64,000 nt of DNA, taken from the IMG/VR virus record IMGVR_UViG_3300023184_000026, positions 62,001 through 126,000 of that record. The stretch is one strand, 5' to 3'. The translations under genes were made by a program, and so were the position numbers. This document shows, piece after piece, positions 18,246-35,043 of this stretch (within the stretch, counting starts at the first letter, position 1; each line of letters starts with the position of its first letter). The notes under the pieces were generated by a model. The model ran no database searches, had not been told where the DNA came from, and worked only from the letters and a program-made list of their open reading frames with translations.

Positions 18246-19433
18246 ATGAACAAAATTGTTACATTATTTTTGATGTTCTTTCTATGGAACAATGTTTATG
18301 GCGTTGTGGGTAAATTGACCGAGGTGACTGGTCCTACACAAGTTAGTAGGGCCAGTACCAAATTGGATGGTAAGATTGATGTGGGTATAGAAATAGATGA
18401 TACCATCGAAACTTTAAAATCGCGTGCTGGTATAACATTTGAAGATGGTACCAGAGTACAATGCACCGAGTTTAGCAAACTGGTTATAGATACGTTTGTG
18501 TATGATCCAAGTAGTGGAAAAGGAAAGCTCGCAATGAAAGCAACAATGGGAACGGTAAGATATGCTTCTGGATTGATTGCTAAAAATAATAAAGAAGAAG
18601 TAAAAGTAAAAACTCCCACGGCATCTATATCAGTACGTGGCACGGATTTTTCAATGACAGTTGATGAATTGGGCAGAAGTTTGGTTATTCTTTTACCATC
18701 CCAGCCACAATTTGGACCTTCCGTTGTTGGTCAGATAACAGTCAGCAATGGACTTGGAACAGTTGTATTGACCAAAGCATATCAGGCTACATTTGTAGCA
18801 TCAAGTTCTGTTGTACCATCTTCTCCAGTACTTTTAAATTTTGACGACGAAAGCAAAGTGAATAATATGTTGTTGATTGATACACCGAAAAATGTCACAC
18901 AAGCTGCAAAAGAAGCAAAGAAAGCATCTGTTGGTTCAGAAAAAGAAGATGATGGTGGTGAAGATAAAAATAAAAAGATGGAAAAGAAAGAAACAAAGTC
19001 CGAGAGTAAATCTGCTGCTACATCAGTCTCACAAGTTGAAGAAATTTCAACCGAATCTGCAACCGAAGCAACAAACTTACCTATCGTCGTGGTTCAAGAA
19101 AACATTGTCACAAAGCTTGATATAACTGCTATAAGTCCAAGCACCAATATTGCTGTTATGGATGCAATTGCAGAAAAACAATCTGTGCAACCAACATCAA
19201 TATCAATTATACCAATAGCACCAATTATATCTATACCAACTTCCACAGTAAATAATGGCTTTACAACGAACGGAACTCATGCTATATTGTATATAACCAA
19301 TGGAAATAATGTGGTTTGGTATACTCTAAAGGCTGATGCCAATGCTATATTCAATATAACTCAAAACACTGAATCAAAGGAATATCCATTGAATTTTGGT
19401 TCCAAACTTAAAGTTAATATAATTCAAAAATGA
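18246..19433 (+). CDS. FecR-domain protein
   Basis: Signal peptide; ITFEDGT, GTVRYASG, KTPTASISVRGTDF. Confidence 0.85.
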   Translation: MNKIVTLFLMFFLWNNVYGVVGKLTEVTGPTQVSRASTKLDGKIDVGIEIDDTIETLKSRAGITFEDGTRVQCTEFSKLVIDTFVYDPSSGKGKLAMKATMGTVRYASGLIAKNNKEEVKVKTPTASISVRGTDFSMTVDELGRSLVILLPSQPQFGPSVVGQITVSNGLGTVVLTKAYQATFVASSSVVPSSPVLLNFDDESKVNNMLLIDTPKNVTQAAKEAKKASVGSEKEDDGGEDKNKKMEKKETKSESKSAATSVSQVEEISTESATEATNLPIVVVQENIVTKLDITAISPSTNIAVMDAIAEKQSVQPTSISIIPIAPIISIPTSTVNNGFTTNGTHAILYITNGNNVVWYTLKADANAIFNITQNTESKEYPLNFGSKLKVNIIQK

Positions 19434-21205
19434 AATCTCATATTATTAAACTATTTGGCGTCGGTTTGCTGATATTAACCGCACTTGTTGTGCTACGCAT
19501 ACAAGATTCATATCCAATAGAAGTAATGCGGCTCAAGGGATTGGACTATTATCAACGCACGCAAGACAAAGTAAAAAGTGAAAATATCATTATTGTTGAA
19601 ATCGACGAAAAAAGTTTAGAAGAAAAAGGACAATGGCCGTGGCCAAGAAATGAACTGGCAGATGGTATAAAGAAGGCGTTTGAAAATGAAGCAGCCACTG
19701 TAGTATTGCCAATTATATTTGCAGAAAAAGATAGAATGGGTGGAGACGCAGTATTTGTGGAAATACTGGGAAAATCGCCTGTAATAACCGCACAATCTGC
19801 GGCGGTAAAGGGCAAAGGCGTGCCAGTACCAAGAGGTATGGCGACGATTGGCGGCAGTGCAGATGGATGGTTATATGATTATCCAAATGCAATCGGACCG
19901 ATAAAAGAAATAGGTGAATCGTCTGCTGGTGTGGGAATGTTATTGACGGCACCTGAACTTGATGGCGTGGTACGTCGCTTGCCGTTGGTTGTACAAGTAA
20001 AAAAAGAAACATATCCAACTTTACCTTTGGAAGTGTTGAGAGTGTTTGGAAATGAACCGAGCTATCAAGCAAAAATCAATGAAGCGGGCGTGCAAGCCAT
20101 AAGAGTAAAAGGCTCGGCCCCAATAAATACAGATGCTAGTGGTAGAGTATGGATAAACTTTAAATACAAGTTTGATAATATTTCATATACAGATAAAGAT
20201 TGGAGCAAAGTAAAGGGCAAGATTGTGGTTATAGCATTAACTGCTGAAGGATTAACAAACACAGTGGCAACTCCCGTAGGAACAGCATATGGACACGAAG
20301 TTAGTATGCAGACACTACAAATGTTGGTTGATGGAAATAGACTGGAACGCAAAGCGGAGTTTGATTTGTATGAGTTGGCAGTTGGAACATTGCTTGGATT
20401 GATTCTTGTAACATCCGCCGCATATCTTGGCTATGTTTATAATGGAATATTGGTAAAAGTGTCTGTGTCTGGGTGTATGTTTTTTGGATTTTATTTGTTC
20501 AAAAAGCATGGCTATTTGATTGATTATACTTGGCCGATTGTGGCAGCATTTTTACCGTGGGTTGGTGCAATATTTATGAGATTTGTGATGGAGTTCAAAT
20601 TGAAGATGCAAATCAAGAAGCAGTTTGGAACATATCTTTCTCCAGCACTGGTTGAAAAACTACAAAAAAATCCGGGCTTGCTCAAACTTGGTGGCGAATC
20701 CAAAGAACTAACTATATTATTTTCCGATATAAGAGGATATACTGCGTTGTCTGAGCATTTTGGGAAAGATGTGCAGGGGCTAACATCTCTCATTAACCGT
20801 TATATGGATGTTATGTTGCCTATAGTAATGAAAAATGAAGGCACTGTTGGAAAACTTATAGGGGACGCTGTAATGGCGTGGTGGTCGGCACCTATTCATG
20901 TAAAAGACCAAGCAACACTTGCAATAAAAGCCGCGCAGGAAATGAATATCGCATTGGTAAAACTCAACGAAGAATCAAAAGCACAAGGAATCCCAACTCT
21001 ATCAATCGGAATCGGAATAAATACAGGAGAAGTTGTTGTGGGAAATATGGGGTCAACGGAGCGATTTAGTTATGATATACTTGGTGACGCAGTGAATCTA
21101 GCGTCTCGCATAGAGGGTCAAACTAAAGAATATGGCGTGTTGATTATTTTGGGAGAAAATACTGTAAAAAAATACAAAAAAGAACAAGAAAATATGAAAA
21201 AATGA
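19430..21205 (+). CDS. CHASE2 + class III adenylate/guanylate cyclase, N-terminal part
   Basis: GQWPWPR, DGVVRR (CHASE2); TM helices; LFSDIRGYT, KLIGDAVM, GINTG, GDAVNLASRIEG. Confidence 0.92.
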   Translation: MKSHIIKLFGVGLLILTALVVLRIQDSYPIEVMRLKGLDYYQRTQDKVKSENIIIVEIDEKSLEEKGQWPWPRNELADGIKKAFENEAATVVLPIIFAEKDRMGGDAVFVEILGKSPVITAQSAAVKGKGVPVPRGMATIGGSADGWLYDYPNAIGPIKEIGESSAGVGMLLTAPELDGVVRRLPLVVQVKKETYPTLPLEVLRVFGNEPSYQAKINEAGVQAIRVKGSAPINTDASGRVWINFKYKFDNISYTDKDWSKVKGKIVVIALTAEGLTNTVATPVGTAYGHEVSMQTLQMLVDGNRLERKAEFDLYELAVGTLLGLILVTSAAYLGYVYNGILVKVSVSGCMFFGFYLFKKHGYLIDYTWPIVAAFLPWVGAIFMRFVMEFKLKMQIKKQFGTYLSPALVEKLQKNPGLLKLGGESKELTILFSDIRGYTALSEHFGKDVQGLTSLINRYMDVMLPIVMKNEGTVGKLIGDAVMAWWSAPIHVKDQATLAIKAAQEMNIALVKLNEESKAQGIPTLSIGIGINTGEVVVGNMGSTERFSYDILGDAVNLASRIEGQTKEYGVLIILGENTVKKYKKEQENMKK

Positions 21206-22005
21206 TAAGCGATATGCTATATATTGGAGATACACAAATAATTTTAAACATGAGAAAAATAACAAACGGTGAAGCCGTGGAAAGAATATCAAAAAAACAT
21301 CCACATTTGGATTGCTCGCAGGTTAAATACAATGGAGCATTTGAAAAAATTGTGGTGAGATGTACTATTCACGATCACACATTTGAAACTCCATACAAAT
21401 ACATTGTTAGTAAGCGAAGCAAGACCGGTTGTATATATTGCCAACGAGACTCTTACAGATTAAATAACGAAACCGTCATTTTCCGTTTCATAAAGACACA
21501 TGGTAAAAAATATGATTACAATAAAGTGCAATATAAAAGTAATTTGAAAAAAGTTGAAATAGTATGTCCAAAACATGGAAGTTTCATGCAGGAACCAGCA
21601 AACCATTGGAACGGACACGGGTGCATGCGATGTGCTGTGGAGAATGGTCGTCACGGAGTTGGTGGATACACCGAAGAAACTCTGAAAGAAAGCAATGAAA
21701 CTGGCGTCGTGTATGTGCTGAAAATAAAAGACTGCAAAATTTACTACAAAATAGGAATATCAAAATTTGGCGGAGACAAAAGAATAAAAGACATATCTTA
21801 TTCCGATAAAGCCGAAGTTTTATATGAGTCAAAAAGAATATTGCTAAAAGACGCATTCAGAATTGAACAAGAAATGCTATCTCAGCATAACCGATATAGG
21901 CATTCCCATAAGAAAATATCCGGATGGACGGAGATAATAGACGAACGACCAAATATCAAATTGTTAGAAAAAAAGATAAACTCCATAAACTATGCAACTA
22001 TTTGA
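21202..22005 (+). mobile_element. Free-standing homing-endonuclease-like gene (Zn-finger repeats + GIY-YIG-like C-terminus) inserted in cyclase gene
   Basis: C.IH...GCIYC and CPKHGSF...H.NGHGC..C repeats; VYVL...YYKIGIS...IEQ; likely start at ATG 21250. Confidence 0.75.
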
Positions 22006-22297
22006 ACTTGATTGTATCGCCGTCAAAGGTAAAAAAGATGGCGCGAGAATTTATACCGTTCTTGAAAATAAATTGAGTGAAAACCAATATAACACAGTTG
22101 TATCTGGTCATTTTGCTTTTCTAAATGATTACAGAATGCAAAGATGGGATGGTGCAATATCTCATGCCAATGAACTCATGACGCAGAATAAAGAAATGAA
22201 GAAGTATTATGAAATGATGATTGAAAGAATATTGGAACTTCGTAACAGCAATCTTGACAAAGATTGGGACGGAGTTTTTAGAGCAACCTCCAAGTAA
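21992..22297 (+). CDS. C-terminal fragment of the CHASE2 cyclase
   Basis: ELDCIAVKGK...IYTV and WDGVFRATSK, the usual C-terminal continuation of CHASE2 cyclases. Confidence 0.85.
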   Translation: MQLFELDCIAVKGKKDGARIYTVLENKLSENQYNTVVSGHFAFLNDYRMQRWDGAISHANELMTQNKEMKKYYEMMIERILELRNSNLDKDWDGVFRATSK

Positions 22298-22818: not shown

Positions 22819-22847
22819 TTGACTTTTCATTTTTTCTTCATCATAGT
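22819..22847 (+). promoter_or_regulatory. Sigma70-like promoter of leader peptide
   Basis: TTGACT-17 bp-CATAGT. Confidence 0.65.
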
Positions 22848-22867
22848 TCTATTTATCAATAACAAAC

Positions 22868-22981
22868 ATGAACTCGTATTCACACAAATCCCAAAACCTC
22901 GCCACTTCGTGGAGTTTGTGCTTTATTACACAACCTACACGTGGAGCCAATAAAGGCGATACAAAGCAGGGTGTGGCATAA
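22868..22981 (+). CDS. Putative attenuator leader peptide (37 aa)
   Basis: MNSYSHKSQNLATSWSLCFITQPTRGANKGDTKQGVA*, between promoter and terminator. Confidence 0.6.
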   Translation: MNSYSHKSQNLATSWSLCFITQPTRGANKGDTKQGVA

Positions 22982-23019
22982 TAGGAGTTAAAGTTTAATA
23001 ACTTTACAAAACCTAAAAA

Positions 23020-23049
23020 GCCCACCCTCCAAAAGAGAGTGGGTTTTTT
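23020..23049 (+). terminator. Attenuator terminator
   Basis: GCCCACCCTC-CAAAA-GAGAGTGGGT followed by T-tract; 5' arm can alternatively pair with 22968-22977. Confidence 0.7.
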
Positions 23050-23086: not shown

Positions 23087-23150
23087 TTGACAAAATAAAA
23101 AAAGTAAGTAGAGTAAGAAGTATCAAATTTAAGTTAGGTTCTTTTAACAA
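23087..23150 (+). promoter_or_regulatory. Second promoter plus boxA-like site
   Basis: TTGACA-16-TAGAGT; GTTCTTTTAACAA at 23138-23150. Confidence 0.5.
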
Positions 23151-23498
23151 TTCAAATTTTTAGGTTAGGTTAGATGGGTAAAAACGCACCTGTAAGCGCG
23201 ATAAAATAGCCACCGGACCATTTAGGTACCGTTTTGTGGGAATCAATATCATTATGTAGGTTAGAGATAGGTTAGATGAAAACATAATGTGAGGCCGAAG
23301 TATATAATGTTATTTATAAAGTTGAAGAAAGAAGCAACAAGACATGTATTTAGCGTGTTGAGTTTCTTTCTTCATATGTTCTGCGTAATATACAACCTCC
23401 TCGTGGTGCAGAACGGGACAAAATAAAAAAATATTTTGTGCGAATAGTATAGTTAAAAGAGTTTTTATAGATATTTATTACTAACATTCAAAAAAAAT

Positions 23499-23816
23499 AT
23501 GGAAGATAAAGATATACTCGTTGAGTTTTTAAGAGGCGGATGGATTGTTGCTCTAATTGGAGCACTGGGTATGTTGGCAAGAACTTTCATGGATGGTGTA
23601 AAACGGTCTTGCACAGAACAAATCAAACGAATCATAGCAGCAGCAATATGTTCAACAATAGCATGGTTTATTTTAGAACAAGTAGAAGTAAGTAGCTTAA
23701 CAAAAGCAATCAGTTATGGCATAACTGGTGTGATAAGTCCGGAAATTCTTCAAGGTATAACAGTATTATCAAAGAAGTTTGCTAAAAAACCAGAAGATTT
23801 CTTAAAGAAAAAATAA
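23499..23816 (+). CDS. Small membrane protein (holin-like)
   Basis: 105 aa, three hydrophobic segments, basic C-terminus. Confidence 0.55.
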   Translation: MEDKDILVEFLRGGWIVALIGALGMLARTFMDGVKRSCTEQIKRIIAAAICSTIAWFILEQVEVSSLTKAISYGITGVISPEILQGITVLSKKFAKKPEDFLKKK

Positions 23817-23821
23817 TTTTT

Positions 23822-23897
23822 GCGGTAGTATCTCAGTTGGTAGAGAACGAGTTTTCCAAACTTGATGTCGCAGGTTCGATCCCTGTCTGCCGCTCCA
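23822..23897 (+). tRNA. tRNA-Gly(TCC)
   Basis: Cloverleaf, loop TTTCCAA, encoded CCA. Confidence 0.93.
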
Positions 23898-23954
23898 TTT
23901 GCAAACGCCACGTCATTGGCGAAATTGAGGTTGACTCAAATGACAATTTTAAAT

Positions 23955-24041
23955 GGGCAAGCGCCAAAGTTGGAGAGTTGGAGCAGACTGTAAATCTGTT
24001 GCCGTAAGGCTGAGTTGGTTCGAATCCGACCTTGCCCACCA
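23955..24041 (+). tRNA. tRNA-Tyr(GTA)
   Basis: Loop CTGTAAA, long variable arm, CCA. Confidence 0.93.
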
Positions 24042-24052
24042 TTTTAGAATAC

Positions 24053-24140
24053 GGAAAATTGGCAGAGTGGTCTAACGCAGGACTTTGCTAAAGTCCCGAT
24101 CCGAAAGGGTCCATAGGTTCGAATCCTATATTTTCCGCCA
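24053..24140 (+). tRNA. tRNA-Ser(GCT)
   Basis: Loop TTGCTAA, long variable arm, G73, CCA. Confidence 0.93.
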
Positions 24141-24151
24141 AATTTATATAC

Positions 24152-24226
24152 GCCGAATAAACATAAATGGTAATGTGCTAGTCTTGTAAATTAGATAAGC
24201 GGGTTCGATTCCCGCATTTGGCTCCA
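24152..24226 (+). tRNA. tRNA-Thr(TGT)
   Basis: Loop CTTGTAA, CCA. Confidence 0.88.
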
Positions 24227-24234
24227 CTTTATAT

Positions 24235-24310
24235 GCAGTAGTAGTTCAATGGTAGAATGCTTCGTTGCCAACGAAGAGGTCTGCGGGTTCAAGTCCCGCC
24301 TACTGCACCA
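24235..24310 (+). tRNA. tRNA-Gly(GCC)
   Basis: Loop TTGCCAA, CCA. Confidence 0.9.
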
Positions 24311-24320
24311 ATTTTTAAAT

Positions 24321-24396
24321 GCCGCGTGACATAGCTGGTTGTGATGACCCCTCTGCAAAAGGGAGGAGATTGGTTCGATTCCAATACGCGGTTCCA
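24321..24396 (+). tRNA. tRNA-Cys(GCA)
   Basis: Loop CTGCAAA, U73, CCA. Confidence 0.88.
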
Positions 24397-24399
24397 TTT

Positions 24400-24503
24400 T
24401 GTTGTGTAGCTCAGAGGTAGACCACTGACGGGATATGATGGTAAAAGACACCGAAAAAGTTCCCTATAAGCAGATGCCGATGGTTCGAATCCATCCATAA
24501 CAA
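24400..24503 (+). ncRNA. tRNA-like RNA with expanded anticodon arm
   Basis: Acceptor TGTTGTG/CATAACA, D arm, T arm GATGG-TTCGAAT-CCATC; extended insert replaces anticodon loop; no CCA. Confidence 0.6.
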
Positions 24504-24513
24504 ATAATTTTAT

Positions 24514-24591
24514 GGGCGTGTGACGTAACTGGATAACCGTGTTTCATTCAAAATGAAAATTCTGTGGGTTCGAGTCCCATCATGCCCACCA
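24514..24591 (+). tRNA. tRNA-Leu(CAA), short variable loop
   Basis: Stem TTTCA/TGAAA, loop TTCAAAA, 5-nt variable loop, A73, CCA. Confidence 0.75.
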
Positions 24592-24723
24592 ATTTTGATA
24601 GTGTATGTGTTTTCGTCTCTAAAATCTTACGGCACATGGAAGACGTGTAACGGGTTCAAAGTCCGACCACTTTGCATTGAGTAGAGTGAGTAAGCCAACC
24701 ATATACATTATCAAAATATTTTT

Positions 24724-24797
24724 GGACGATTGGTGAAAAAGTATCACTGCTGACTGAAGATCAATAATTCCGGTTGCAAGATCCGGGTCGTCCACCA
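24724..24797 (+). tRNA. tRNA-Phe(GAA), atypical T arm
   Basis: Loop CTGAAGA, acceptor GGACGAT/GTCGTCC, CCA. Confidence 0.75.
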
Positions 24798-24798
24798 T

Positions 24799-25128
24799 TT
24801 ATTTAAAATCAAATTCTTTTTTATATTCTAACACTGATGTTATATATGGGACGCTACCATCATCCTCGAATTGTCTGTATGTAAAATCTATTATAAAGTT
24901 TCCAACTTGAACAACTGTGTGTGGTAGTTTGTAAACTATATGTTTAACATCTACGGTCTTTGCTTGTGGAAATCCATTATTATTTAAGAAATCTGCCAGT
25001 GAATCTGATATTTCACAACACATTCCTTTTGACCACGTTGGTGCATGAATAATATTATAATAATCCTCCCCATCGGACTGTAACCAAGAAGTGCAAAGTT
25101 CATTTAAAAGTATTTCTGTTAGTTTCAT
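24799..25128 (-). CDS. Hypothetical protein
   Basis: 109-aa ORF, N-terminus MKLTEILLNE; GMC...H...D motif order suggests a papain/transglutaminase-like fold (inference). Confidence 0.6.
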   Translation of the reverse strand: MKLTEILLNELCTSWLQSDGEDYYNIIHAPTWSKGMCCEISDSLADFLNNNGFPQAKTVDVKHIVYKLPHTVVQVGNFIIDFTYRQFEDDGSVPYITSVLEYKKEFDFK

Positions 25129-25223
25129 AACATATACATATCCTAAATGTTATTTAATATCAAAAAGAAATATTTGAAAGTATCGGCGGCAATACATTTA
25201 AACTACCCGAAACACCATTTTAT

Positions 25224-25297
25224 TGAGATATATTGTAGTGGCAGCAAAAGAGTCTCTGAAACTCATAGCATTGGTTCGATTCCAATTATCTCATCCA
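25224..25297 (+). tRNA. tRNA-Gln(CTG)
   Basis: U1-A72, loop CTCTGAA, CCA. Confidence 0.85.
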
Positions 25298-25462
25298 TTT
25301 TATTATACAACAACTGCGGAGATAGTAATTCCAAAAAAGTTGTTACTGTATGAGTAGAAGATATCGTGAGTTAATTACTATGTCACGTGAAGCGAAAAAT
25401 ATAGGATAATATAAAGGTGAAGCCTCATCTTGAATGGGTTAAATTCCCAAAGGCATTTTTAC

Positions 25463-25538
25463 TGTCCCATAGCTCAGTTGGCAGAGCAAGAAACTGTTAA
25501 TTTCAAGGTCGCACGTTCGAGCCGTGCTGGGACAGCCA
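25463..25538 (+). tRNA. tRNA-Asn(GTT)
   Basis: Loop CTGTTAA, G73, CCA. Confidence 0.92.
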
Positions 25539-25544
25539 ATTTAT

Positions 25545-25617
25545 TGTGATGTAGTGTCAAAGTAGCACGGGCTCTGTTAAAGCTCTTGTCGTGGTGCGAG
25601 TCCACGCTTCACAGCCA
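25545..25617 (+). tRNA. tRNA-Asn(GTT), divergent second copy
   Basis: Loop CTGTTAA, T loop TGCGAGT, G73, CCA. Confidence 0.8.
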
Positions 25618-25623
25618 TTTTAC

Positions 25624-25698
25624 GGATCGCAAGCATATAAAGTGATGCTCTAGGCTCTTAACCTTGAGAACACGGGGCAGTACCGTGGCGGTCCACCA
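25624..25698 (+). tRNA. tRNA-Lys(CTT)
   Basis: Loop CTCTTAA, atypical T loop GGCAGTA, CCA. Confidence 0.8.
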
Positions 25699-25791
25699 AT
25701 TTCAAGCAAGAAGAGGCTGTTAAAGTCAGCATGGACATTACAAGATGCTAAATGGTGATAAGTGAATTCACATCTTACTTGAAAAATTTAT

Positions 25792-25870
25792 GGAACTAAA
25801 GCCACAGTGGACGGGCAGCGGTCTTTTAAACCGTTAATTCGTGTGGGTTCAACTCCCACTGGTTCCACCA
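25792..25870 (+). tRNA. tRNA-Lys(TTT)
   Basis: Loop CTTTTAA, CCA. Confidence 0.88.
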
Positions 25871-25876
25871 TTTTAT

Positions 25877-25959
25877 AGCAGAGACAAGCCAAGGGACGCT
25901 AACTGCGCTCATAACGCAGCCGAAAGGTATGATGTGTTCGATTCACATCTCTGCTTCCA
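25877..25959 (+). tRNA. tRNA with CAT anticodon and long variable arm
   Basis: CTGCG-CTCATAA-CGCAG; variable arm CCGAAAGG; acceptor AGCAGAG/CTCTGCT; CCA. Confidence 0.7.
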
Positions 25960-25966
25960 TTTTTAT

Positions 25967-26042
25967 CAGTGTGTGGTGCCAAAGGTTGGCGATTCCGCTT
26001 GGAACGGAAATTATGTAGGTTCGAGTCCTATCACACTGACCA
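25967..26042 (+). tRNA. tRNA-Pro(TGG)
   Basis: C1-G72, loop CTTGGAA, CCA. Confidence 0.87.
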
Positions 26043-26047
26043 TTTAT

Positions 26048-26124
26048 GCTTGTGTAGCTCAACTGGATAGAGCAACAGATTACGAATCTGTAGGTTGAAG
26101 GCTCGAATCCTTCCACATGCACCA
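26048..26124 (+). tRNA. tRNA-Arg(ACG)
   Basis: Loop TTACGAA, CCA. Confidence 0.9.
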
Positions 26125-26127
26125 TTT

Positions 26128-26224
26128 TGAACAGAAGCCTAGTTGTTCGTAAAACAGGAGTCGGTGTAATCATATTGATGTTTTTCAACAGGTAACCGTG
26201 CGCGGAATAATCGGGTGCTGTTCA
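26128..26224 (+). ncRNA. 97-nt structured element, copy 1
   Basis: Closed by TGAACAG/CTGTTCA; 3 differences from copy at 27079. Confidence 0.65.
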
Positions 26225-26230
26225 TTTTTT

Positions 26231-26305
26231 GGCCCTATAGAATAGAAGTTAGTTCGCCTGACTTTCAATCAGGAGATGTGGGAGCGTTACCCACTGGGGC
26301 TACCA
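26231..26305 (+). tRNA. tRNA-Glu(TTC)
   Basis: Loop CTTTCAA, atypical T loop AGCGTTA, CCA. Confidence 0.85.
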
Positions 26306-26308
26306 TTT

Positions 26309-26464
26309 TTGAGCGGCAGCGTGGAAGGACATGCAGCCTTGAGAAGTTCTATTACGCGCAGTATAGTGTACATAAAGCTGTGCCTCTGAAACGAAGCGAT
26401 GACTACCTAATAGATCGGGTCAGATTCAATGTCATCAATAGGTATCAATTCCTATCCGACTCAA
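26309..26464 (+). ncRNA. tRNA-like RNA with large central insert
   Basis: TTGAGCGG/CCGACTCAA ends, D-like GCGTGGAAGGACATGC, T-like ATAGG-TATCAATT-CCTAT. Confidence 0.5.
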
Positions 26465-26731
26465 ATTAATTTTGAATAGCAGCTCGGAGTGTAGGAAAGT
26501 TTTTTCCTTTCCGGTACGAGCATGGGGTCTAACCATCAGCGGAAAAATAAGCAACGAAAAGCCTCTGGGTTCATAACAATATGTTAAATGGAAAAATAAT
26601 AACATGTTGGAATTTATGCGTAAATAAGAAACTCGCTATAGTGTAGCTATATAAAGCAAAACTACACCTATTCAATTAATTTTATGAGTTATAATAAAGT
26701 TTTGATATAATATATATAGTATATATTATAT

Positions 26732-26974
26732 ATGAACATATCACCAATACAATCATCGGCTGAAACAAATAGTTCACCAGTAAACATTCAAGCTGCGGCT
26801 AAAATATATAGTAAAAATAGTCCAGTATCACTTAGTACAAATGCATCTGGATTTTTTGCAAATGCTGAAGCTGATGTTGTGCATGATCTTAAAAAAGCTT
26901 TGATGGCTGCAATAAATTGTGGAGATTTTGACAAAGCTATACATATTTTAAAATGTTTAAAAGAACTGGGATAA
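26732..26974 (+). CDS. Hypothetical protein
   Basis: 80-aa ATG ORF in tRNA array. Confidence 0.55.
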   Translation: MNISPIQSSAETNSSPVNIQAAAKIYSKNSPVSLSTNASGFFANAEADVVHDLKKALMAAINCGDFDKAIHILKCLKELG

Positions 26975-27078
26975 TAATATATAAACAATTTACAGAGAGT
27001 TAAGGGCACTGCTACCAGAATATCGTGGTAGGTTCACGTAGCGTAATAACCACACATGGCTAAACACTCTCTAATATT

Positions 27079-27175
27079 TGAACAGAAGTCTAGTTGTTTG
27101 TAAAACAGGAGTCGGTGTAATCATATTGATGTTTTTCAACAGGCAACCGTGCGCGGAATAATCGGGTGCTGTTCA
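27079..27175 (+). ncRNA. 97-nt structured element, copy 2
   Basis: Near-identical direct repeat of 26128-26224. Confidence 0.65.
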
Positions 27176-27179
27176 TTTT

Positions 27180-27253
27180 TGGGATATGGTGTAATGGTAA
27201 CACAGACGACTTTGACTCGTCTATTCATGGTTCGAGTCCATGTATCCCAGCCA
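27180..27253 (+). tRNA. tRNA-Gln(TTG)
   Basis: U1-A72, loop CTTTGAC, G73, CCA. Confidence 0.92.
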
Positions 27254-27314
27254 TTATATAGTTGATGGGTTATATATACTCTTCATTTTTGTGTATTAGT
27301 ATATTTATAAAAGT

Positions 27315-27515
27315 ATGAGCGACATGACATCAAATAATTTGATTATACGCAGAATGATTGATAAGAAAACATCTTATACAGCAATCTTTTTGAAAGGAGA
27401 ACGACCAAGAATTTTTCCTACAGATGATTATGAACATGCTCGTATTTTACAAATATACAAGCAAGATAGAAAATATGAAGGTATAATAAACGATTTTAAT
27501 GATTTTGATTTGTAA
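27315..27515 (+). CDS. Hypothetical protein
   Basis: 66-aa ORF preceded by TATTTATA motif. Confidence 0.55.
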   Translation: MSDMTSNNLIIRRMIDKKTSYTAIFLKGERPRIFPTDDYEHARILQIYKQDRKYEGIINDFNDFDL

Positions 27516-27518
27516 TAT

Positions 27519-27596
27519 GGTAGAGAAGCACAAGTAGTTATATGCTCTCGTTTGATAGACGAAGGATAGTGAGTGCAAGTCTCACCTCTACCACCA
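27519..27596 (+). tRNA. tRNA-Ile(GAT)
   Basis: Loop TTGATAG, T loop TGCAAGT, CCA. Confidence 0.8.
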
Positions 27597-27811
27597 TATA
27601 GCCCGAATCATCCCTCTCTTATGTAAAAATAATGATGGACTCAATCTGAAACTACAGATGATGACACATGACGATGTGTCTAGGGCAATCTTTTATATAT
27701 GCGAATTTTAATTACGGCGAATCTGCCATAATTAAACAAAGGAAAAAAAGAATCAATAACACTTGACATTTTGTTAGAAAATATTAGAGTTTTGATAGAT
27801 AGATATTTTAT

Positions 27812-27887
27812 GGGCTAGTATCTCAGTTGGTAGAGAAGCTGCTTTGCAAGCAGAAGGTCGCAGGTTCGATCCCTGTCTGGTCCACCA
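27812..27887 (+). tRNA. tRNA-Ala(TGC)
   Basis: G3:U70, loop TTTGCAA, CCA. Confidence 0.93.
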
Positions 27888-27893
27888 TTTTAT

Positions 27894-27969
27894 ACCGAGT
27901 TAGCACAGTGGCTAATGCACTTCGTTTACATCGAAGCTATCAGGGGTTCGAGTCCCTTACTCGGTACCA
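27894..27969 (+). tRNA. tRNA-Val(TAC)
   Basis: Loop TTTACAT, CCA. Confidence 0.9.
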
Positions 27970-27997
27970 TTTCAATTGTTCTATATACTTATAGTAT

Positions 27998-28390
27998 ATG
28001 ATTAAATTAAAAGATTTATTGCCAGAATCACCATTTGCAGTGTTTGTTTTAGCCAAAGCAAATGATGGATATGCAGCCACAACTCGTGCAGCAGACCGAA
28101 ATGAACAAGGAAAAATTGGATTGCCCGGCGGAAAAGTTGATATTGGTGAATCACCAGTTCAAGCAGCAACAAGAGAATCTAATGAAGAAGGATGGCAAGT
28201 TGATATAACAAATACAACACCTATTCATAAACAATTAGTTGATGGAAAAATGGTATATTGGTATGCAGGAGAAAATGCAGTAAAGTTAAATAATTTTAAA
28301 GAAAAAGGTAGAATAACTCCCATAGTTGCAACTATTGAACAAATTTTATCTTCTGGTTACGGAAATGAAAATCTAAAACACTTAGTATAA
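27998..28390 (+). CDS. NUDIX hydrolase
   Basis: Nudix box LPGGKVDIGESPVQAATRESNEEG. Confidence 0.9.
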   Translation: MIKLKDLLPESPFAVFVLAKANDGYAATTRAADRNEQGKIGLPGGKVDIGESPVQAATRESNEEGWQVDITNTTPIHKQLVDGKMVYWYAGENAVKLNNFKEKGRITPIVATIEQILSSGYGNENLKHLV

Positions 28391-28634
28391 CAAGTGCTTG
28401 AAACGTGTTCGTTCATATGCTTTCGTGAAAGTATATCAACAGAAGCAGTGTATTGGTTCAATCGTTAGTTCTTTTGCGTAAAAAGACATTTTTAGCATAC
28501 GGAGGGTAGCCCCTTGGTGGTGACGATATACCTTATCACGTCAATTATTTATATGCTTGACACATAACAAATATTGTTCATTATGACGTGAGAAATGAGA
28601 TGCAATAATGCAAATCATTTCATACACACACAAA

Positions 28635-28859
28635 ATGAAAGATACAAATACACAAAAGACGGGTAAAAATGGTTATGAAATTAGATTGGAAATTCTTGGA
28701 CTAGCAATGGGACAAGCAGACTCAGCTTATTTCAACCAACTTGAGCGACTTCGCCATGTTGCGGGTGATAAAGGAACATGGGAATTGCCAAAAGATAATC
28801 GTGTAGATGAAGCAATGCAAATTGCTGAAAAACTCTACAAGTTTGTTGAGAATAAGTAA
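28635..28859 (+). CDS. Hypothetical protein
   Basis: NGYEIRLEIL...AEKLYKFV small ORF. Confidence 0.6.
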   Translation: MKDTNTQKTGKNGYEIRLEILGLAMGQADSAYFNQLERLRHVAGDKGTWELPKDNRVDEAMQIAEKLYKFVENK

Positions 28860-28913
28860 CAGTTATATCTTGGTGTAACAGATATAAACTAGTGTATTTG
28901 ATTACACCATTAT

Positions 28914-28991
28914 ACAGGTGTAGCGTAACTTGGTTATCGCGTCTGGTTTGGGACCAGAAGACTGTGGGCTCAAATCCCACCACCTGTACCA
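28914..28991 (+). tRNA. tRNA-Pro(TGG), second copy
   Basis: TCTGG-TTTGGGA-CCAGA, CCA. Confidence 0.88.
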
Positions 28992-28999
28992 ATTTTTAT

Positions 29000-29075
29000 G
29001 GCGTTTATAGTGTAGTGGTTCGCACACAAGTTTGTGAAACTTGAAGGACGATTTAGAATATCGTTAGACGCCCCA
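29000..29075 (+). tRNA. tRNA-His(GTG)
   Basis: G-1:C73, loop TTGTGAA, CCA. Confidence 0.85.
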
Positions 29076-29086
29076 ATTTTATTTAT

Positions 29087-29163
29087 AGGTGGGTCGCATA
29101 ATTGGTATTGCAGCAGTCTCCAAAACTGCCACCATGTGGGTTCGAGTCCCACCCCACCTGCCA
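29087..29163 (+). tRNA. tRNA-Trp(CCA)
   Basis: Loop CTCCAAA, G73, CCA. Confidence 0.92.
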
Positions 29164-29464
29164 TTTATTTCAATATAGTATAAAGAATATACAATAATTT
29201 ATTAACATAATAATCGCAATGATGTGTATATATTTAAAGATATGTCAAAGAAAAAAACATCTAAGAAAATTAAACGAGTATCAATGAAAGAAATTGTTGA
29301 TGCATTTTATTCAGGAATTTCGCCAACTAAAATAGGTAAAATGGCAAAACAACTTGTAAAACAACAAGATGCCAGAAATTATTGATGTTAGTTTTTATAA
29401 CAACAAAAACAAAGTTTTAGAAGATAGTTATGTTGTGTATATACAACAACCAAAATAAAATCAT

Positions 29465-30535
29465 ATGAGCAAAATCACTATTCAAAATCTAGCCGAAAGA
29501 TTGTCGGCAGTTGAAACAAAATTAGCCACGCTTTCTGGCCTACAAGCCAGCGGCGTTGATGCATCAAGCATCCAAGAACTGGATATTCGTTTGTCCATCG
29601 TTGAACGTACCGTAGATGAACTGATATCAAAACCTGCCGCCGACGCAGTTGCTGCATTGGTGGCTGCATCGGCAGACGAAGCACCAACAGCTGTAGCAAG
29701 TGTTGTGGCATTGAGCCCATCAGCCACAGTTCCAGACGCCGCTGCAATTGTATCTGAAGTTATAGCAGCACAAGCTGCTGTTGACGCGCCAGAATCGCAA
29801 GAAGTTAATGATGTTGTTGTCGCTGCAATTACTGCAATTCTCACCGCTCCCGCTGATGTTGTAACAGACACAGAAGCTCTGATTGAAGCCATCACCGAAG
29901 CTGTTGCCGAAGTTGCAACAATTGATGATGCAACAGTAGCACAAGCTGCTGCTGACGCAGTTGCTCAAATCATTGAAACCGCAACAGGTGAAGCACCAAC
30001 AGCAGATGTGATTGAACAAATCACAGATGCTGTAGCATCTTGCCCAGTTGAAGCCGCTGTATCCGAAGTTATTACATCCGAAGCAGCACCAGATGCCGTG
30101 GTGGATACGCTCATTGAAAATATTGTTGCTGACAGCCCAAGTGCTGATGTATCAGCCGCCGCCGAAATCGTGGGTTTGGTCGTTGAATCCGTTGTCACCG
30201 CCGATGCTGAAACACAACCAGACGTTGTTGCCGCAGTTGCCGCAGCCGTCGCCGCAGTTGTTAATGCTGAACCAGAAGTGGTACAAGATGCAGAAGCCAT
30301 CACAGAAGCAATCACAGCAGCCGTTGCTGAATTATCAGCACCAGAATCAGAGGATGTGCAAGCTGACGTAGCAGATGCAGTTGCTCAAATTATTGCTACT
30401 GCAACCAACGTAGAAGAAGTCACAGATGCAGTTCAAATTCAAATTGAAGAAGCTGTTGCTGCTGACCCAGAACTAGAAGTCATCAATAGCCGTTTGACGG
30501 AAGTTGAAGCGAAAGTTGGTCTGCTGGGAAAATAG
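29465..30535 (+). CDS. Acidic Ala/Val-rich repeat protein (predicted -1 frameshift extension to 30609)
   Basis: 356 aa, coiled-coil-like ends, ~130-aa internal duplication, no F/W/Y/H. Confidence 0.85.
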   Translation: MSKITIQNLAERLSAVETKLATLSGLQASGVDASSIQELDIRLSIVERTVDELISKPAADAVAALVAASADEAPTAVASVVALSPSATVPDAAAIVSEVIAAQAAVDAPESQEVNDVVVAAITAILTAPADVVTDTEALIEAITEAVAEVATIDDATVAQAAADAVAQIIETATGEAPTADVIEQITDAVASCPVEAAVSEVITSEAAPDAVVDTLIENIVADSPSADVSAAAEIVGLVVESVVTADAETQPDVVAAVAAAVAAVVNAEPEVVQDAEAITEAITAAVAELSAPESEDVQADVADAVAQIIATATNVEEVTDAVQIQIEEAVAADPELEVINSRLTEVEAKVGLLGK

Positions 30536-30588
30536 GTTCCAGCGTAGGACACGTGACAGAGAATATAATGTCCACTGTCAAACGCTGG
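30526..30588 (+). promoter_or_regulatory. Predicted -1 programmed ribosomal frameshift signal
   Basis: In-frame G GGA AAA, 6-nt spacer, stems CCAGCGT/ACGCTGG, GGACA/TGTCC, TGACAG/CTGTCA. Confidence 0.7.
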
Positions 30589-30619
30589 TTTAAAAACTGG
30601 TCAGTGTAATCAAAACTCA

Positions 30620-30645
30620 AAGGCTCCAGAAATGGAGCCTTTTTT
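30620..30645 (+). terminator. Intrinsic terminator
   Basis: AAAGGCTCCA-GAAA-TGGAGCCTTTTTT. Confidence 0.85.
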
Positions 30646-30674
30646 ATTTATTATATGTATATTTATTAATTTAC

Positions 30675-30766
30675 GGAAAAATGGCTGAGTCCGGTCTAAG
30701 GCGTCCGACTTGAAATCGGAAGTAGGCGCAAGTCTACCGTGGGTTCGAATCCTACTTTTTCCGCCA
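30675..30766 (+). tRNA. tRNA-Ser(TGA)
   Basis: Loop CTTGAAA, long variable arm, CCA. Confidence 0.93.
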
Positions 30767-30772
30767 ATTTTT

Positions 30773-30847
30773 GCAGCATAAACATAAATGGTGATGTGCA
30801 AGTTTCGTAAACTTGAAAACCGAGTTCGATTCTCGGACGCTGCTCCA
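30773..30847 (+). tRNA. tRNA-Thr(CGT)
   Basis: Loop TTCGTAA, CCA. Confidence 0.88.
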
Positions 30848-30893
30848 TAATCTTCATATTATAAGTTCATATATAATATACTTATTGGTAGCT

Positions 30894-31568
30894 ATGGCTA
30901 CTAATAATATAACACTAAACGGTCAGACATTTAATAAGTCTGACTCATTCAATCCAAACACAGAAAATCTACAAACAGATGGTCTTTCTGTGCTTTGTTT
31001 CAGTCAAAATGATGATTCTAAAGTAAATGACTGTATCATAGATGGTCAAGATGCACGTTGGGGAGGCAAAGCCTCATTAACATTTGGTCTTGAATATAAT
31101 AGATGCACATTCAAGAATGGCACTGCACGAGCATTTGATATGGTGCGTGGTGGTAATGTTACATTTACTGAATGTATATTTGAAAATACTGTACGCAAGC
31201 CTGTAGTATCTCAGTTTACAGTTGCTGAACAATGCGACATTGGTATAAAAGGTGGTGTACATGATGTAACATTTCATAGTTGCATATTCAATGATATTTT
31301 AATAGGTGATTATAGCATATATGATCAACAAGATCGTCCAAAAGCTCGCCGCTTTACTTTCATCAATTGTAAAAACAAAGATGGTGGACCAATCATTATT
31401 CGTGGCAAATATGTTGATAAAGATTCTATCAATCTTGTTGGTACACATGCAAAAATGTGGGTTTGGCCGTCATTTTTAACCAAATTATATTGGATGTTTA
31501 ATCGCAAGTTTGGCGACACTCGCAAACCAGATGGTTGGAATGTATATGATCATAGAGAATTGGATTAA
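30894..31568 (+). CDS. Right-handed beta-helix-like protein
   Basis: Repeated xxFxxCxF motifs (YNRCTF, VTFTECIF, VTFHSCIF). Confidence 0.55.
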   Translation: MATNNITLNGQTFNKSDSFNPNTENLQTDGLSVLCFSQNDDSKVNDCIIDGQDARWGGKASLTFGLEYNRCTFKNGTARAFDMVRGGNVTFTECIFENTVRKPVVSQFTVAEQCDIGIKGGVHDVTFHSCIFNDILIGDYSIYDQQDRPKARRFTFINCKNKDGGPIIIRGKYVDKDSINLVGTHAKMWVWPSFLTKLYWMFNRKFGDTRKPDGWNVYDHRELD

Positions 31569-31678
31569 AAATACAAAAACATCGTAGTTTTTATATAAAA
31601 ATTTATCTTGCCAAATTGGTAAACGTGTATCATATTTATCGGTTCAAACGTCTAAAGACGAAAACTAAATAATAATAT

Positions 31679-33652
31679 ATGAAATATAATAACACACAAA
31701 ATAACTCGCTGCTTGTGAAGCTCTTTGCTTCTATGATGCTGTTTGTGGTCGCTGTGACCAGTGTATTTGCCATTCCCGGCATTACATCCACAAACCTACA
31801 AACAACTGCGGGTGTAACAGTTACAGATGCAGGTACTACTCTTAGTATCGTCGCCCCAAACAAGTCTGTGCTTACATGGCAGAACTTTGGAAGTGGCACG
31901 GATACTATTGCTATTGGAGACGCACTAAACTATACACTTCCTTCCAATAATGCATCTGTATTAAACATTGTTGCTGGTGGAGCATCCTCAACCATCAACG
32001 GTACACTTTCATCTAACGGCAATGTATATGTCCTCAATCCAAACGGCATCTTGGTCGGTGGCAGTGCTCGAATTGATGTCAATCGTTTGGGCTTGAGCAC
32101 ATCCGACAATCCATCATTTGCTAGTTTTTATTTCCAGCAAAATGGATTTCTTCCGTCTCAAGACGGGTTGGCTCCTGTCGCTGGTAATACAACCATCAAT
32201 AATGGTTCAATCATTGCAGTAAGCGAAAACATTACTCTTGTTTCCAAGAATATCACAATCAACGGTGTATTGTCTCAAGGAAATCTTGTGCTCAATGCTG
32301 ATGGTAATGTTACTGTGGGTTCTGCTGGTATGGCTTATATCGCTGGCAATTTGACTATCAACAATCCAACAGGAACAACTACAATTGGTTCTGCTGGCAA
32401 CAACACAATTATCACCAATAACCTAGTGGTCAATGGAAATTCTACAAGCGCGTTTTCTTCGGTTGCCACTGGTACAATACAAGCCAAGACGTTAAATGTA
32501 ACAGCTGGAACAATTCTGGCCGATCGTATCAGCACAAACAGCACAACTGTCAATGGCACAAATGTCACTGTTAATGTTGGTTCTGGTGCTGGCACGCCTT
32601 CTGTTACCGCAGTTGGCAATGGCACAGTACAAATATCCGCACCTGCGTCTCTTACTGTTAATGTCAGCAACTCTGGTGCTGGTGCAACCACCGTATCTGC
32701 TGGTGGTAATTTGACACTGGGTAAGGTACAAGTAGAAGGTTTGGCTGGTGCTTCATTTACTGGTGCATCTGTGACTGACACTTCGTCCAGAATATTTGTT
32801 TATGGCGGTGCTGCGTTCACTGCAACTGCTGGGAATGTTACTATCGACAAAGGACAACACAGTTTTGGTCCAGTTAGCGTATCTGCTACTGGCGAAGCCT
32901 TGATTGTTGAAGACGCAGCCACACAGTTGAACGTTGTCAACACACCAAAGTTGACATTGCGTTCTGTTGATTATATTTTTCAAACTCCAACAACTGGTGT
33001 AGTTAATAGTGCATTGGTTTCTGTTGTGGGTTCTGGAAATATAACACTTGGTGCAGTCACAAACTCCGCTGGAAATTACACAATCACCGGAAACGATGTT
33101 GTGTTTGCCAACAACGGTGCATTGTCTATATCCACGACCGCAACTGGCAACGCTTCTGTTATATCAACGGGCGCAGTGACTCTCGGCTCAATAGCCACGG
33201 GTGGCACACTAACAGTTACTTCTGCTGGAGCAATCACTCAAGCAGTTGATACCAAAGTCAGTTCGTTTGGATCTGTTCGTTTTGTTGGAACTGGATTGAC
33301 ACTATCAAATGCTGGCAACGGCTTTGGTGGCATCACAGTTGATGTTGGTACTGCCGGTACTGCCACACTCACAGAAGAAACAACTCTAAACCTCGTTTCT
33401 CTTCGCGCTGCGAATGCAACATTGAAAAGTACATTCGATGTTATTACAACTGGTGCATTGCCGGTAGTCGCTGATACATTCAATGTTGTTGTTGGTGGGG
33501 ATTTTGTTCCTGCTGCAAACTTCCGCGCCGTCAATGGTATTACAGTATTGTCTGGTGGAAATGTTGACTTGAGCAATTTGAGTTTGATCACAAACTTGAA
33601 TAACAAGAGCCCAAGCATCATTGCCAAAGGATACAAGGCTCCACAGCCATAA
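31679..33652 (+). CDS. Filamentous-haemagglutinin-like (TPS domain) secreted protein
   Basis: Signal peptide; VLTWQNF, STINGTLSSNGNVYVLNPNGIL; T/G/N/V-rich beta-helical repeats. Confidence 0.85.
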   Translation: MKYNNTQNNSLLVKLFASMMLFVVAVTSVFAIPGITSTNLQTTAGVTVTDAGTTLSIVAPNKSVLTWQNFGSGTDTIAIGDALNYTLPSNNASVLNIVAGGASSTINGTLSSNGNVYVLNPNGILVGGSARIDVNRLGLSTSDNPSFASFYFQQNGFLPSQDGLAPVAGNTTINNGSIIAVSENITLVSKNITINGVLSQGNLVLNADGNVTVGSAGMAYIAGNLTINNPTGTTTIGSAGNNTIITNNLVVNGNSTSAFSSVATGTIQAKTLNVTAGTILADRISTNSTTVNGTNVTVNVGSGAGTPSVTAVGNGTVQISAPASLTVNVSNSGAGATTVSAGGNLTLGKVQVEGLAGASFTGASVTDTSSRIFVYGGAAFTATAGNVTIDKGQHSFGPVSVSATGEALIVEDAATQLNVVNTPKLTLRSVDYIFQTPTTGVVNSALVSVVGSGNITLGAVTNSAGNYTITGNDVVFANNGALSISTTATGNASVISTGAVTLGSIATGGTLTVTSAGAITQAVDTKVSSFGSVRFVGTGLTLSNAGNGFGGITVDVGTAGTATLTEETTLNLVSLRAANATLKSTFDVITTGALPVVADTFNVVVGGDFVPAANFRAVNGITVLSGGNVDLSNLSLITNLNNKSPSIIAKGYKAPQP

Positions 33653-33676
33653 TAGATATTATAAAGTGTATACTTC

Positions 33677-33708
33677 AAAAAACCCAACCATTTACGGTTG
33701 GGTTTTTT
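33677..33708 (+). terminator. Intrinsic terminator
   Basis: AAAAAACCCAACC-ATTTAC-GGTTGGGTTTTTT. Confidence 0.85.
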
Positions 33709-33737
33709 GTTATGTTCATATATATTTATAATAACTT

Positions 33738-33989
33738 ATGAAGAAATCTGAACTCAAAAATCTTATCAAAGAAGTAATGGATGAAATAGTTGAACTTAAT
33801 CCAGAAAAGCAAGAACAAATGACAACCACACAGTTGAATGGGTTGAATCAAAAATCTGAAAAAATGCTAGAAATAATGAAATCAAGTGATGTTAAGTTGG
33901 AACCTTGGATGATTGATCTTATCAGCCAAGCATATCATAATATTGATGCTGTTGCCAACAAACTGATGTTTGGTGATAAAAAAGATTAA
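33738..33989 (+). CDS. Hypothetical protein
   Basis: MKKSELKNLIKE N-terminus; TATTTATA upstream. Confidence 0.65.
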   Translation: MKKSELKNLIKEVMDEIVELNPEKQEQMTTTQLNGLNQKSEKMLEIMKSSDVKLEPWMIDLISQAYHNIDAVANKLMFGDKKD

Positions 33990-34131
33990 GAAAGTTGTTG
34001 ACTTTAGATAAAATTCTGCCACTGTCTTAATCAAGAAAAGGGTGTGATGAATTGATCACACGGAGGTAACGGGTAGGCTTTCCTCCGAAGGACACGAACC
34101 GCAATATGTGCCTTCCTCGTTCTTTATATTT

Positions 34132-34208
34132 CCTCTTATAGCTCAATTGGTTAGAGCGGGTGCTTTATAGGCGCAGGGTTGTGGGTTCAAATCCTACTAG
34201 GAGGACCA
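34132..34208 (+). tRNA. tRNA-Ile(TAT)
   Basis: Loop TTTATAG, A73, CCA. Confidence 0.85.
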
Positions 34209-34296
34209 ATTTTAGCAAAGAGTAACTAGTATAATATTCAACTTGATTCCAACCCAAGCCAAAATATTGTGTGAACTAGTTTACTCGGCTATTTAT

Positions 34297-34372
34297 GGTA
34301 GTGAGGTCGATTGGTTAAGGCAGCGGTTTCATAAGCCGTTCTATGTGGGTTCAATTCCCACCACTACTTCCA
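34297..34372 (+). tRNA. tRNA-Met(CAT)
   Basis: GCGGT-TTCATAA-GCCGT, CCA. Confidence 0.85.
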
Positions 34373-34380
34373 TTTTTAAT

Positions 34381-34456
34381 GCCGCCGAAGTTTATATGGG
34401 TGAACAATTCATTATTAATGAATAAGAAGTTGGTCCGATTCCAACCGGTGGCTCCA
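34381..34456 (+). tRNA. tRNA with ATT anticodon (nominal Asn), Thr-like acceptor
   Basis: ATTCA-TTATTAA-TGAAT; acceptor GCCGCCG/CGGTGGC, U73, CCA. Confidence 0.7.
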
Positions 34457-34511
34457 TTTATTGTATATTGACAAATATGTATTATTGAGTAATATAATAA
34501 CAATATTAAAA

Positions 34512-34676
34512 ATGAGTGAACTAGGTCTATTAAGAATTCTTCCAAAAGAACAATTTACAGAATATAAAGGAAAATGTATACAGGTTCGTGACTTAATAAA
34601 GATACTTGAAAAACAAAATAAAAAAAATACTAATAATGGGCCTGCCCGGCGCAGGAAAAACAACACTGGCAACTGA
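34512..34676 (+). CDS. Hypothetical protein
   Basis: Short ATG ORF after TTGACA promoter. Confidence 0.4.
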   Translation: MSELGLLRILPKEQFTEYKGKCIQVRDLIKILEKQNKKNTNNGPARRRKNNTGN

Positions 34677-35043
34677 ATTAGCCAAGATGTTGAATGCAGT
34701 TCATTTTAACGCTGACGAAATTCGTAAAGAAATCAATAAAGATTTGACGTTTAGTATACAAGATAGAATAGAACAAGCACGTCGTATGAAAGTGTTATGT
34801 GATATAGTTGTTAGGTCTGGAAATTATGCTATAGCAGATTTTGTATGTCCAACAAAACAGGCACAAGATGTATTTATAACAGAAGATACATATGTTGTTT
34901 GGGTTGACAGAACAAAGGTTGGTAGATATGAAGACACCAACAAACTGTTTTATCCTCCAGAGAATTTTGATATGATAGTCAATGAATATGGATCTCCAAA
35001 ATTTTGGTCGCTATTGATTGTTGACGAACTGCAAGCACACTAA
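34606..35043 (+). CDS. Adenylylsulfate-kinase-like P-loop protein
   Basis: GLPGAGKTT, NADEIRK, DLTFS..DR..QA.R, ADFVCP; start codon uncertain. Confidence 0.75.
   Translation: MKNKIKKILIMGLPGAGKTTLATELAKMLNAVHFNADEIRKEINKDLTFSIQDRIEQARRMKVLCDIVVRSGNYAIADFVCPTKQAQDVFITEDTYVVWVDRTKVGRYEDTNKLFYPPENFDMIVNEYGSPKFWSLLIVDELQAH

Follow-up and report, generated by a model that had tools for sequence, protein, structure and literature searches.

The stretch of DNA analysed in this work (here referred to as the window) comprises 64,000 nucleotides, corresponding to positions 62,001 to 126,000 of the IMG/VR virus record IMGVR_UViG_3300023184_000026, which represents a 297 kb contig of an uncultured giant phage. 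At the head of the tRNA gene cluster of this phage, a promoter (P1) is located on the + strand at positions 22819-22847, consisting of TTGACT (22819-24), a 17-nt spacer and CATAGT (22842-47). Although P1 matches only 9 of 12 sigma-70 consensus positions, it belongs to a motif family, TTGAC-N17/18-YANAGT, which was found 15 times in the window against 0.61 expected, 14 of these occurrences being on the + strand, and both hexamers are conserved in the related contigs that were aligned. P1 is followed by an ORF of 37 codons plus stop (22868-22981, +), which would leave a 5' UTR of about 13 nt without a Shine-Dalgarno sequence. Since only 4 of 39 long ORFs of the phage have anything like a Shine-Dalgarno sequence, its absence here does not argue against translation. 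The end of this ORF contains AGGGTGTGGC at 22968-77 (covering codons 34-37, hereafter region 2), which is nearly complementary to GCCCACCCT at 23020-28 (region 3), the latter also being the 5' arm of an intrinsic terminator (23021-23049, +) composed of a stem at 23021-23043 and a T-run at 23044-49. Between both regions, nested inner stems are present (22982-23015), being TAGG/CCTA and TAAAGTT/AACTTTA, which include the hairpin at 22989-23006.

Directly after the terminator a second promoter, P2, was identified (TTGACA, 16 nt, TAGAGT; 23087-23114, +), followed by a structured RNA and a ribozyme candidate (both described below), and by a 105-residue membrane-protein ORF with weak similarity to holins (23499-23816, +), which is the first gene after the leader and which is syntenic with it in the related loci retrieved with this protein. 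ARAGORN finds 30 tRNA genes from 23822 to 38280 and a tmRNA at 45795, where the first-pass annotation had counted 33 tRNAs. The first tRNA gene lies about 770 nt after the terminator, and the first 21 tRNA genes (23822-29163, +) would be reachable by read-through before the next + strand terminator-like site at 30619. All other features listed in the first-pass annotation, including P2, were confirmed at their positions.

In order to determine whether this arrangement is conserved, related sequences from viral and metagenome contigs were collected by means of three searches, performed with the neighbouring small protein, with the upstream lipoprotein and with a profile of the leader peptide in metagenomes, which together gave 29 distinct ORF sequences and 28 distinct peptides (individual relatives are designated here by L numbers). 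The leader frame is the only one of six that is open in all 29 sequences, whereas the next best frame, on the antisense strand (the antisense ORF 22849-23025), is broken in 11 of 29. The ORF lengths are 36, 37, 38, 41 and 43 codons among these 29, and 40 codons in L056, and thus differ by whole codons, while the third codon switches between TCG and AGC, both coding for Ser. The same layout of ORF, antiterminator and terminator occurs at the 5' edge of the tRNA array in every relative with enough downstream sequence. The upstream genes differ among relatives (a cyclase, an RNA ligase or an NMN-transporter neighbourhood), yet the order leader, P2, small protein and tRNAs stays the same, and the leader therefore belongs to the tRNA module. 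It is single-copy in the window, in which no paralogous leader was found. P2 is conserved in nearly all relatives (L032 lacks the TTGAC hexamer at the aligned position), is sometimes flush with the T-run, and is duplicated in L007 and L031. The profile search, covering 1.84 billion proteins, retrieved only the family itself, apart from a translated CRISPR repeat array that was rejected as spurious, and no Pfam or NCBIfam family matched the peptide. Among cultured phages, no DNA match was found beyond tRNA genes, nor any tblastn match of the leader peptide or of the neighbouring small protein. The DNA polymerase of the phage is of the T4-like type, its best cultured match being that of a Microcystis phage at 42.5% identity, which is only a weak hint of a cyanobacterial host, and a search with the cyclase gene returned only hits of 25-27% identity.

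Both of the mutually exclusive conformers proposed in the first-pass annotation fold as predicted. The segment 22962-23031 folds to exactly the proposed antiterminator hairpin at -22.6 kcal/mol (z = -4.09), with 0 of 200 shuffles being as stable, while the terminator is worth -13.1 kcal/mol for its core and -18.2 kcal/mol with the A/U extension. The + strand terminator stem of the window contains one C.A mismatch, so that a simple terminator scan listed it on the - strand only, but in relatives the + strand stem is perfect and it covaries (for example, pair 182:192 is UA in 11 and CG in 9). When the transcript of each relative was folded up to just before the 3' arm of the terminator, the lowest-energy structure was in every case one in which the end of the ORF pairs with the 5' arm of the terminator and encloses a small hairpin, the sequence of this inner hairpin being different in relatives. 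The core of the helix (GGUG:CACC and GGC:GCC) never varies and is thus uninformative, but flanking pairs change compatibly, position -1 being GC in 15, AU in 6 and GU in 4, and position +8 being AU in 6, UA in 6, GC in 3 and CG in 1. In L040, the C-terminus of the peptide is different and region 2 is no longer located at the very end of the ORF, yet an 11-bp helix with the changed terminator arm is kept. In L057 and L059 the terminator is replaced by a different hairpin (CCCGCC/GGCGGG), but a complement to region 2, CCACACCC, remains just upstream and overlaps the new 5' arm, although by only 3 nt. Cognate duplexes of regions 2 and 3 average -19.7 kcal/mol against -16.8 kcal/mol for non-cognate pairings, and none of 20,000 permutations reached the observed value. 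The sequences are related, so that these P values are upper bounds on significance.

The most striking property of the leader is the amino acid content of its peptide. The peptide encoded in the window holds 19 of the 20 amino acid kinds (Glu being absent) and uses 30 distinct codons, for which, among 37-codon windows of the phage's own genes, P(at least 19 kinds) = 0.034 and P(at least 30 codons) = 0.004 (0.004-0.02 over the estimates made). Every relative has 19 or 20 kinds in 36-43 residues, with the probability of obtaining 20 of 20 by chance being 0.0025-0.0037 in 37 residues and 0.00025-0.0006 in 31 residues, and three lineages reach 20 kinds within 31 codons. Most of the kinds are present once. 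The set is kept complete while residues move: Cys and Arg swap positions 18 and 25 in one clade, His and Tyr swap positions 4 and 6 in L057, Tyr moves from position 4 to 14 or to 9, Ile moves from position 20 to 17 or to 6, and Arg moves among four positions. In order to quantify this, residues were shuffled within alignment columns using 12 representatives below 80% identity, giving 18.78 ± 0.19 kinds per peptide against 19.58 observed (P = 5e-5). P is about 1e-4 at identity cut-offs of 70% and 65%, but rises to 0.09 when only the four lineages below 60% identity are used. Furthermore, of 13 cases in which a residue occurring once in the consensus is lost from its column, 12 have the same residue elsewhere in the same peptide, where shuffles give 4.0 ± 1.4. 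Some of these cases share ancestry, and we count about ten independent events against one uncompensated loss. Diversity thus exceeds chance and is actively maintained across lineages, and the selected property is best described as one of all amino acids rather than of all codons, the latter having been suggested in the first-pass annotation. Rare codons are not significantly enriched (CAI 0.635 against 0.711, P = 0.13).

The substitution pattern of the leader was then compared with that of the neighbouring small-protein gene. Variability is almost equal at the three codon positions (entropy 0.46, 0.44 and 0.51), and in most of the genome pairs in which the neighbouring gene is saturated at synonymous sites (dS above 1.5), the leader has a dS of 0.23-0.8, its dN/dS being about 0.3-0.8 against about 0.1 for the neighbour. 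This is the pattern of an element constrained at the nucleotide or codon level with loose constraint on residue identity, and not that of an ordinary protein. Region 2 explains part of it, whereas a codon-aware alifold analysis gave only three small helices with little covariation inside the ORF, so that the synonymous constraint remains partly unexplained.

The effect of ribosome position was modelled by masking 12 nt upstream and 15 nt downstream of the first base of the P-site codon. In this model, the antiterminator forms in the pre-terminator transcript for A-site codons 2-31 and is blocked for codons 32-37, while with the region up to 22991 masked, as by a ribosome at the stop codon, the terminator is the best fold. 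The sensing zone would therefore span codons 2-31, so that the last six codons cannot signal. In all relatives 18-20 amino acid kinds lie inside this zone, with Val, Asp, Glu or Leu as the usual absentees, and in some lineages Val, Asp or Glu lie only in the last six codons. No conserved protector helix pairing an upstream segment with region 2 was found: only a 5-bp CACAC:GUGUG pairing is predicted, which shows no change on both sides in the 22 aligned relatives and the CACAC segment of which is, by our reading, replaced in L040 and L057. The untranslated default is thus read-through, unlike in trp. A GGAG following the stop codon was considered as a Shine-Dalgarno sequence for a downstream ORF, but no start codon was seen after it, and it pairs within the antiterminator.

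Each of the computational tests suggested in the first-pass annotation, namely folding of both conformers, the search for the same layout and for covariation in related phages, and the comparison of diversity with chance, came out in favour of its interpretation. The explanation that we favour, with moderate confidence only considering that it rests on sequence alone, that translation of the ORF, masking by the ribosome, read-through, its trigger and the feedback are inferred, and that the host, and hence transcription-translation coupling, is unknown, is that of a ribosome-mediated (leader-peptide) transcription attenuator at the 5' boundary of the tRNA module, the leader of which appears built to depend on nearly every aminoacyl-tRNA. 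In the proposed sequence of events, P1 starts a transcript in which the last four codons, the stop codon and a nested hairpin can pair with the 5' arm of the terminator. A ribosome reaching the stop codon on time would cover 22968-22991, upon which the terminator would form and a transcript of about 195 nt would be released. A ribosome that lags or stalls with its A site at any of codons 2-31 would allow the antiterminator to form first, and RNA polymerase would then read through P2, the structured RNA, the ribozyme candidate and the small membrane-protein gene into the tRNA genes. Because the codons of this zone carry 18-20 amino acid kinds, shortage or cleavage of almost any tRNA would be expected to raise read-through, and the resulting phage tRNAs would then restore leader translation, giving negative feedback. 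The main weakness of this explanation is that P2, a strong promoter, lies directly after the terminator and that more promoters lie inside the array, and read-through from P1 can therefore only add to downstream transcription.

A more far-reaching reading is possible, though it remains tentative, in which the leader serves as a one-piece gauge of the whole aminoacyl-tRNA pool, a shortfall in almost any tRNA, whether from starvation, host shut-off or an anticodon-nuclease defence, opening the antiterminator and raising transcription of the phage's own near-complete tRNA set. Selection would then act on the completeness of the amino acid set rather than on the fold of the peptide, which would be a previously undescribed kind of constraint on a coding sequence, with a signature that could be searched for elsewhere.

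Of the alternatives, the one that survives best, although we consider it unlikely, is an autonomous micropeptide gene whose 37-residue product acts in trans on an unknown target, with the helix around the stop codon only stabilising the mRNA or tuning its translation. The position of P2 directly after the terminator makes the unit look self-contained, thirteen peptide positions are invariant in 18 relatives, several positions (W15, F19, Q22-P23, G26, G30, G35) are nearly fixed, which could reflect a peptide function, and gene callers predicted the ORF in several metagenomes. However, a folded or binding peptide gives no reason to keep all 20 amino acid kinds by moving once-only residues around, the dN/dS and depressed dS of the leader are unlike those of the neighbouring protein gene, and region 2 stays complementary to the 5' arm of the terminator through changes in both partners, including in a lineage where the peptide C-terminus was replaced. 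A nascent-peptide arrest leader of the TnaC, SecM or ErmCL type, in which conserved residues stall the ribosome in response to one particular ligand or factor and amino acid completeness is incidental, appears more doubtful still. It would involve the same attenuator anatomy, and the conserved W15, F19-I20, Q22-P23, G26 and G30 lie within exit-tunnel distance of codons in the sensing zone, but residues that are invariant in close relatives are lost or moved in more distant members (I6 and N20 in L040, Y6 in L057, N7 in L062, T20 in L038) while the RNA switch and the full amino acid set persist, the compensation statistics are not explained, and no known arrest motif was recognised. The least likely alternative is that the short terminated transcript is itself a trans-acting small RNA, possibly dual-function like the attenuator-derived rnTrpL (PMC6614838), which would fit the near-equal conservation of the codon positions, the depressed dS and the possession of its own promoter and terminator, but not the open frame kept in 29 of 29 sequences nor the amino acid set, which suggest that translation matters, nor a helix that competes with the terminator in every lineage. 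Chance is excluded by conservation across 29 sequences.

Leader-peptide attenuation is a textbook mechanism, the described cases of which sense one or a few amino acids through runs of their codons and control biosynthetic genes, whereas the present element would be a general sensor of decoding capacity carried by a virus in front of its own tRNA genes. With the amino acid operon attenuators of enterobacteria (trp, his, leu, pheA, and the multi-amino-acid thr and ilvGMEDA leaders) it shares a promoter-proximal short ORF, the stop codon of which lies inside or next to the 5' strand of an antiterminator competing with an intrinsic terminator, such that a ribosome at the stop would favour termination and one stalled upstream would favour read-through. 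It differs from these in having no run of codons for one amino acid, no conserved 1:2 protector or pause helix, tRNAs in a phage rather than biosynthetic enzymes as downstream genes, and a second promoter after the terminator. An Rfam scan at gathering thresholds gave only tRNAs and the tmRNA, and in a permissive scan Trp_leader (RF00513) and Thr_leader (RF00506) scored 16.1 and 18.3 bits against cut-offs of 41 and 55 (E = 3.7 and 1.4), these matches falling mainly on the terminator and the sequence just upstream of it, so that the element is not a member of either family. With leader ORFs that sense translation inhibition (ermC, mef/mel, vmlR and bmrCD type attenuators; PMC4335068) it would share the principle that any event holding the ribosome on a short upstream ORF frees an antiterminator, but those respond to antibiotic-bound ribosomes at defined peptide motifs and control resistance genes, while here no drug is implied, the composition points to the tRNA or amino acid supply, and the output is a tRNA array. 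As this element would do, T-box riboswitches couple the tRNA or aminoacylation state to read-through of a terminator by way of an antiterminator, but a T-box binds one specific uncharged tRNA directly and has no ORF, whereas this element, which has no T-box match in Rfam, would use the translating ribosome as its sensor and report on all tRNAs at once. Phage tRNA arrays, whose purpose has been debated for decades, have been linked to escape from tRNA-cleaving defences (PMC10264068, PMC11555353), which provides a plausible setting in which the element would supply demand-dependent control. Our full-text literature searches found no paper describing a leader peptide with all 20 amino acids or a leader in front of a phage tRNA array.

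Finally, two further RNA elements lie in the read-through path between P2 and the small membrane-protein gene. The first (23165-23377, +) is a conserved structured non-coding RNA of unknown family, without a match in Rfam, in which 26 of 43 predicted pairs show compensatory changes in 13 relatives. The second (23378-23452, +) is a candidate HDV-like self-cleaving ribozyme, which matches RF02682 with 33.4 bits (E = 4e-4) in the window and 34.6 bits in L034, in both cases below the gathering score of 44. It is conserved in relatives, and our reading of the aligned sequences shows covarying P1, P2, P3 and P4 helices.

With respect to the region located between the promoter P2 and the ribozyme candidate, a conserved, highly structured non-coding RNA is present at window positions 23165-23377 (+), for which 26 of 43 predicted base pairs show compensatory changes across 13 relatives and for which there is no Rfam match, although visual inspection indicated that two of the related loci, designated L038 and L039, carry a different sequence at this position. 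This RNA is followed at 23378-23452 (+) by a candidate HDV-like self-cleaving ribozyme (RF02682), which was also detected in the related locus L034 (6640-6710), with scores of 33-35 bits that are below the cut-off of 44, while a second copy is located near position 11480 of L005. Our reading of the aligned relatives shows covarying P1, P2, P3 and P4 helices, and such a ribozyme would cut the upstream RNA away from the transcript of the small protein and the tRNAs (compare the theta ribozymes next to phage tRNAs; PMC10879173). In addition, some relatives carry a tRNA-Lys(CUU) between the structured RNA and the small membrane-protein gene (L010, 5845-5928; L040, 3653-3731; L057, 716-799), where the window has only the ribozyme candidate; in L057 this tRNA directly follows the ribozyme.

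The profile search performed with the leader peptide returned a single long protein hit (P0008), which corresponds to a translated CRISPR repeat array with a repeated 12-residue unit in two frames, and its resemblance to the middle of the leader peptide was judged to be spurious.

A CHASE2-adenylate/guanylate cyclase gene at 19430-22297 (+) appears to be split by an inserted ORF with DUF723 and T5orf172 domains (homing-endonuclease-like, 21202-22005), with the remaining C-terminal piece being located at 21992-22297, whereas the relative L039 has an uninterrupted version of 686 residues. A promoter-like motif, TTGAC-N17/18-YANAGT, occurs at 15 sites in the window (for example at 12383, 14983, 27763, 35764, 38330, 46216, 48607, 50723, 53050 and 54674) against 0.61 expected, 14 of these being on the + strand, and it probably represents the main early or middle promoter type of the phage. 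A phage-encoded tmRNA (Rfam, 94 bits), for which ARAGORN reports an unusually long tag peptide, lies downstream of the tRNA array at 45795-46185 (+). Finally, an ORF with a two-partner-secretion (TPS) domain and DUF5649 repeats is located inside the tRNA-rich region at 31679-33652 (+), which is an unexpected cargo for a phage.
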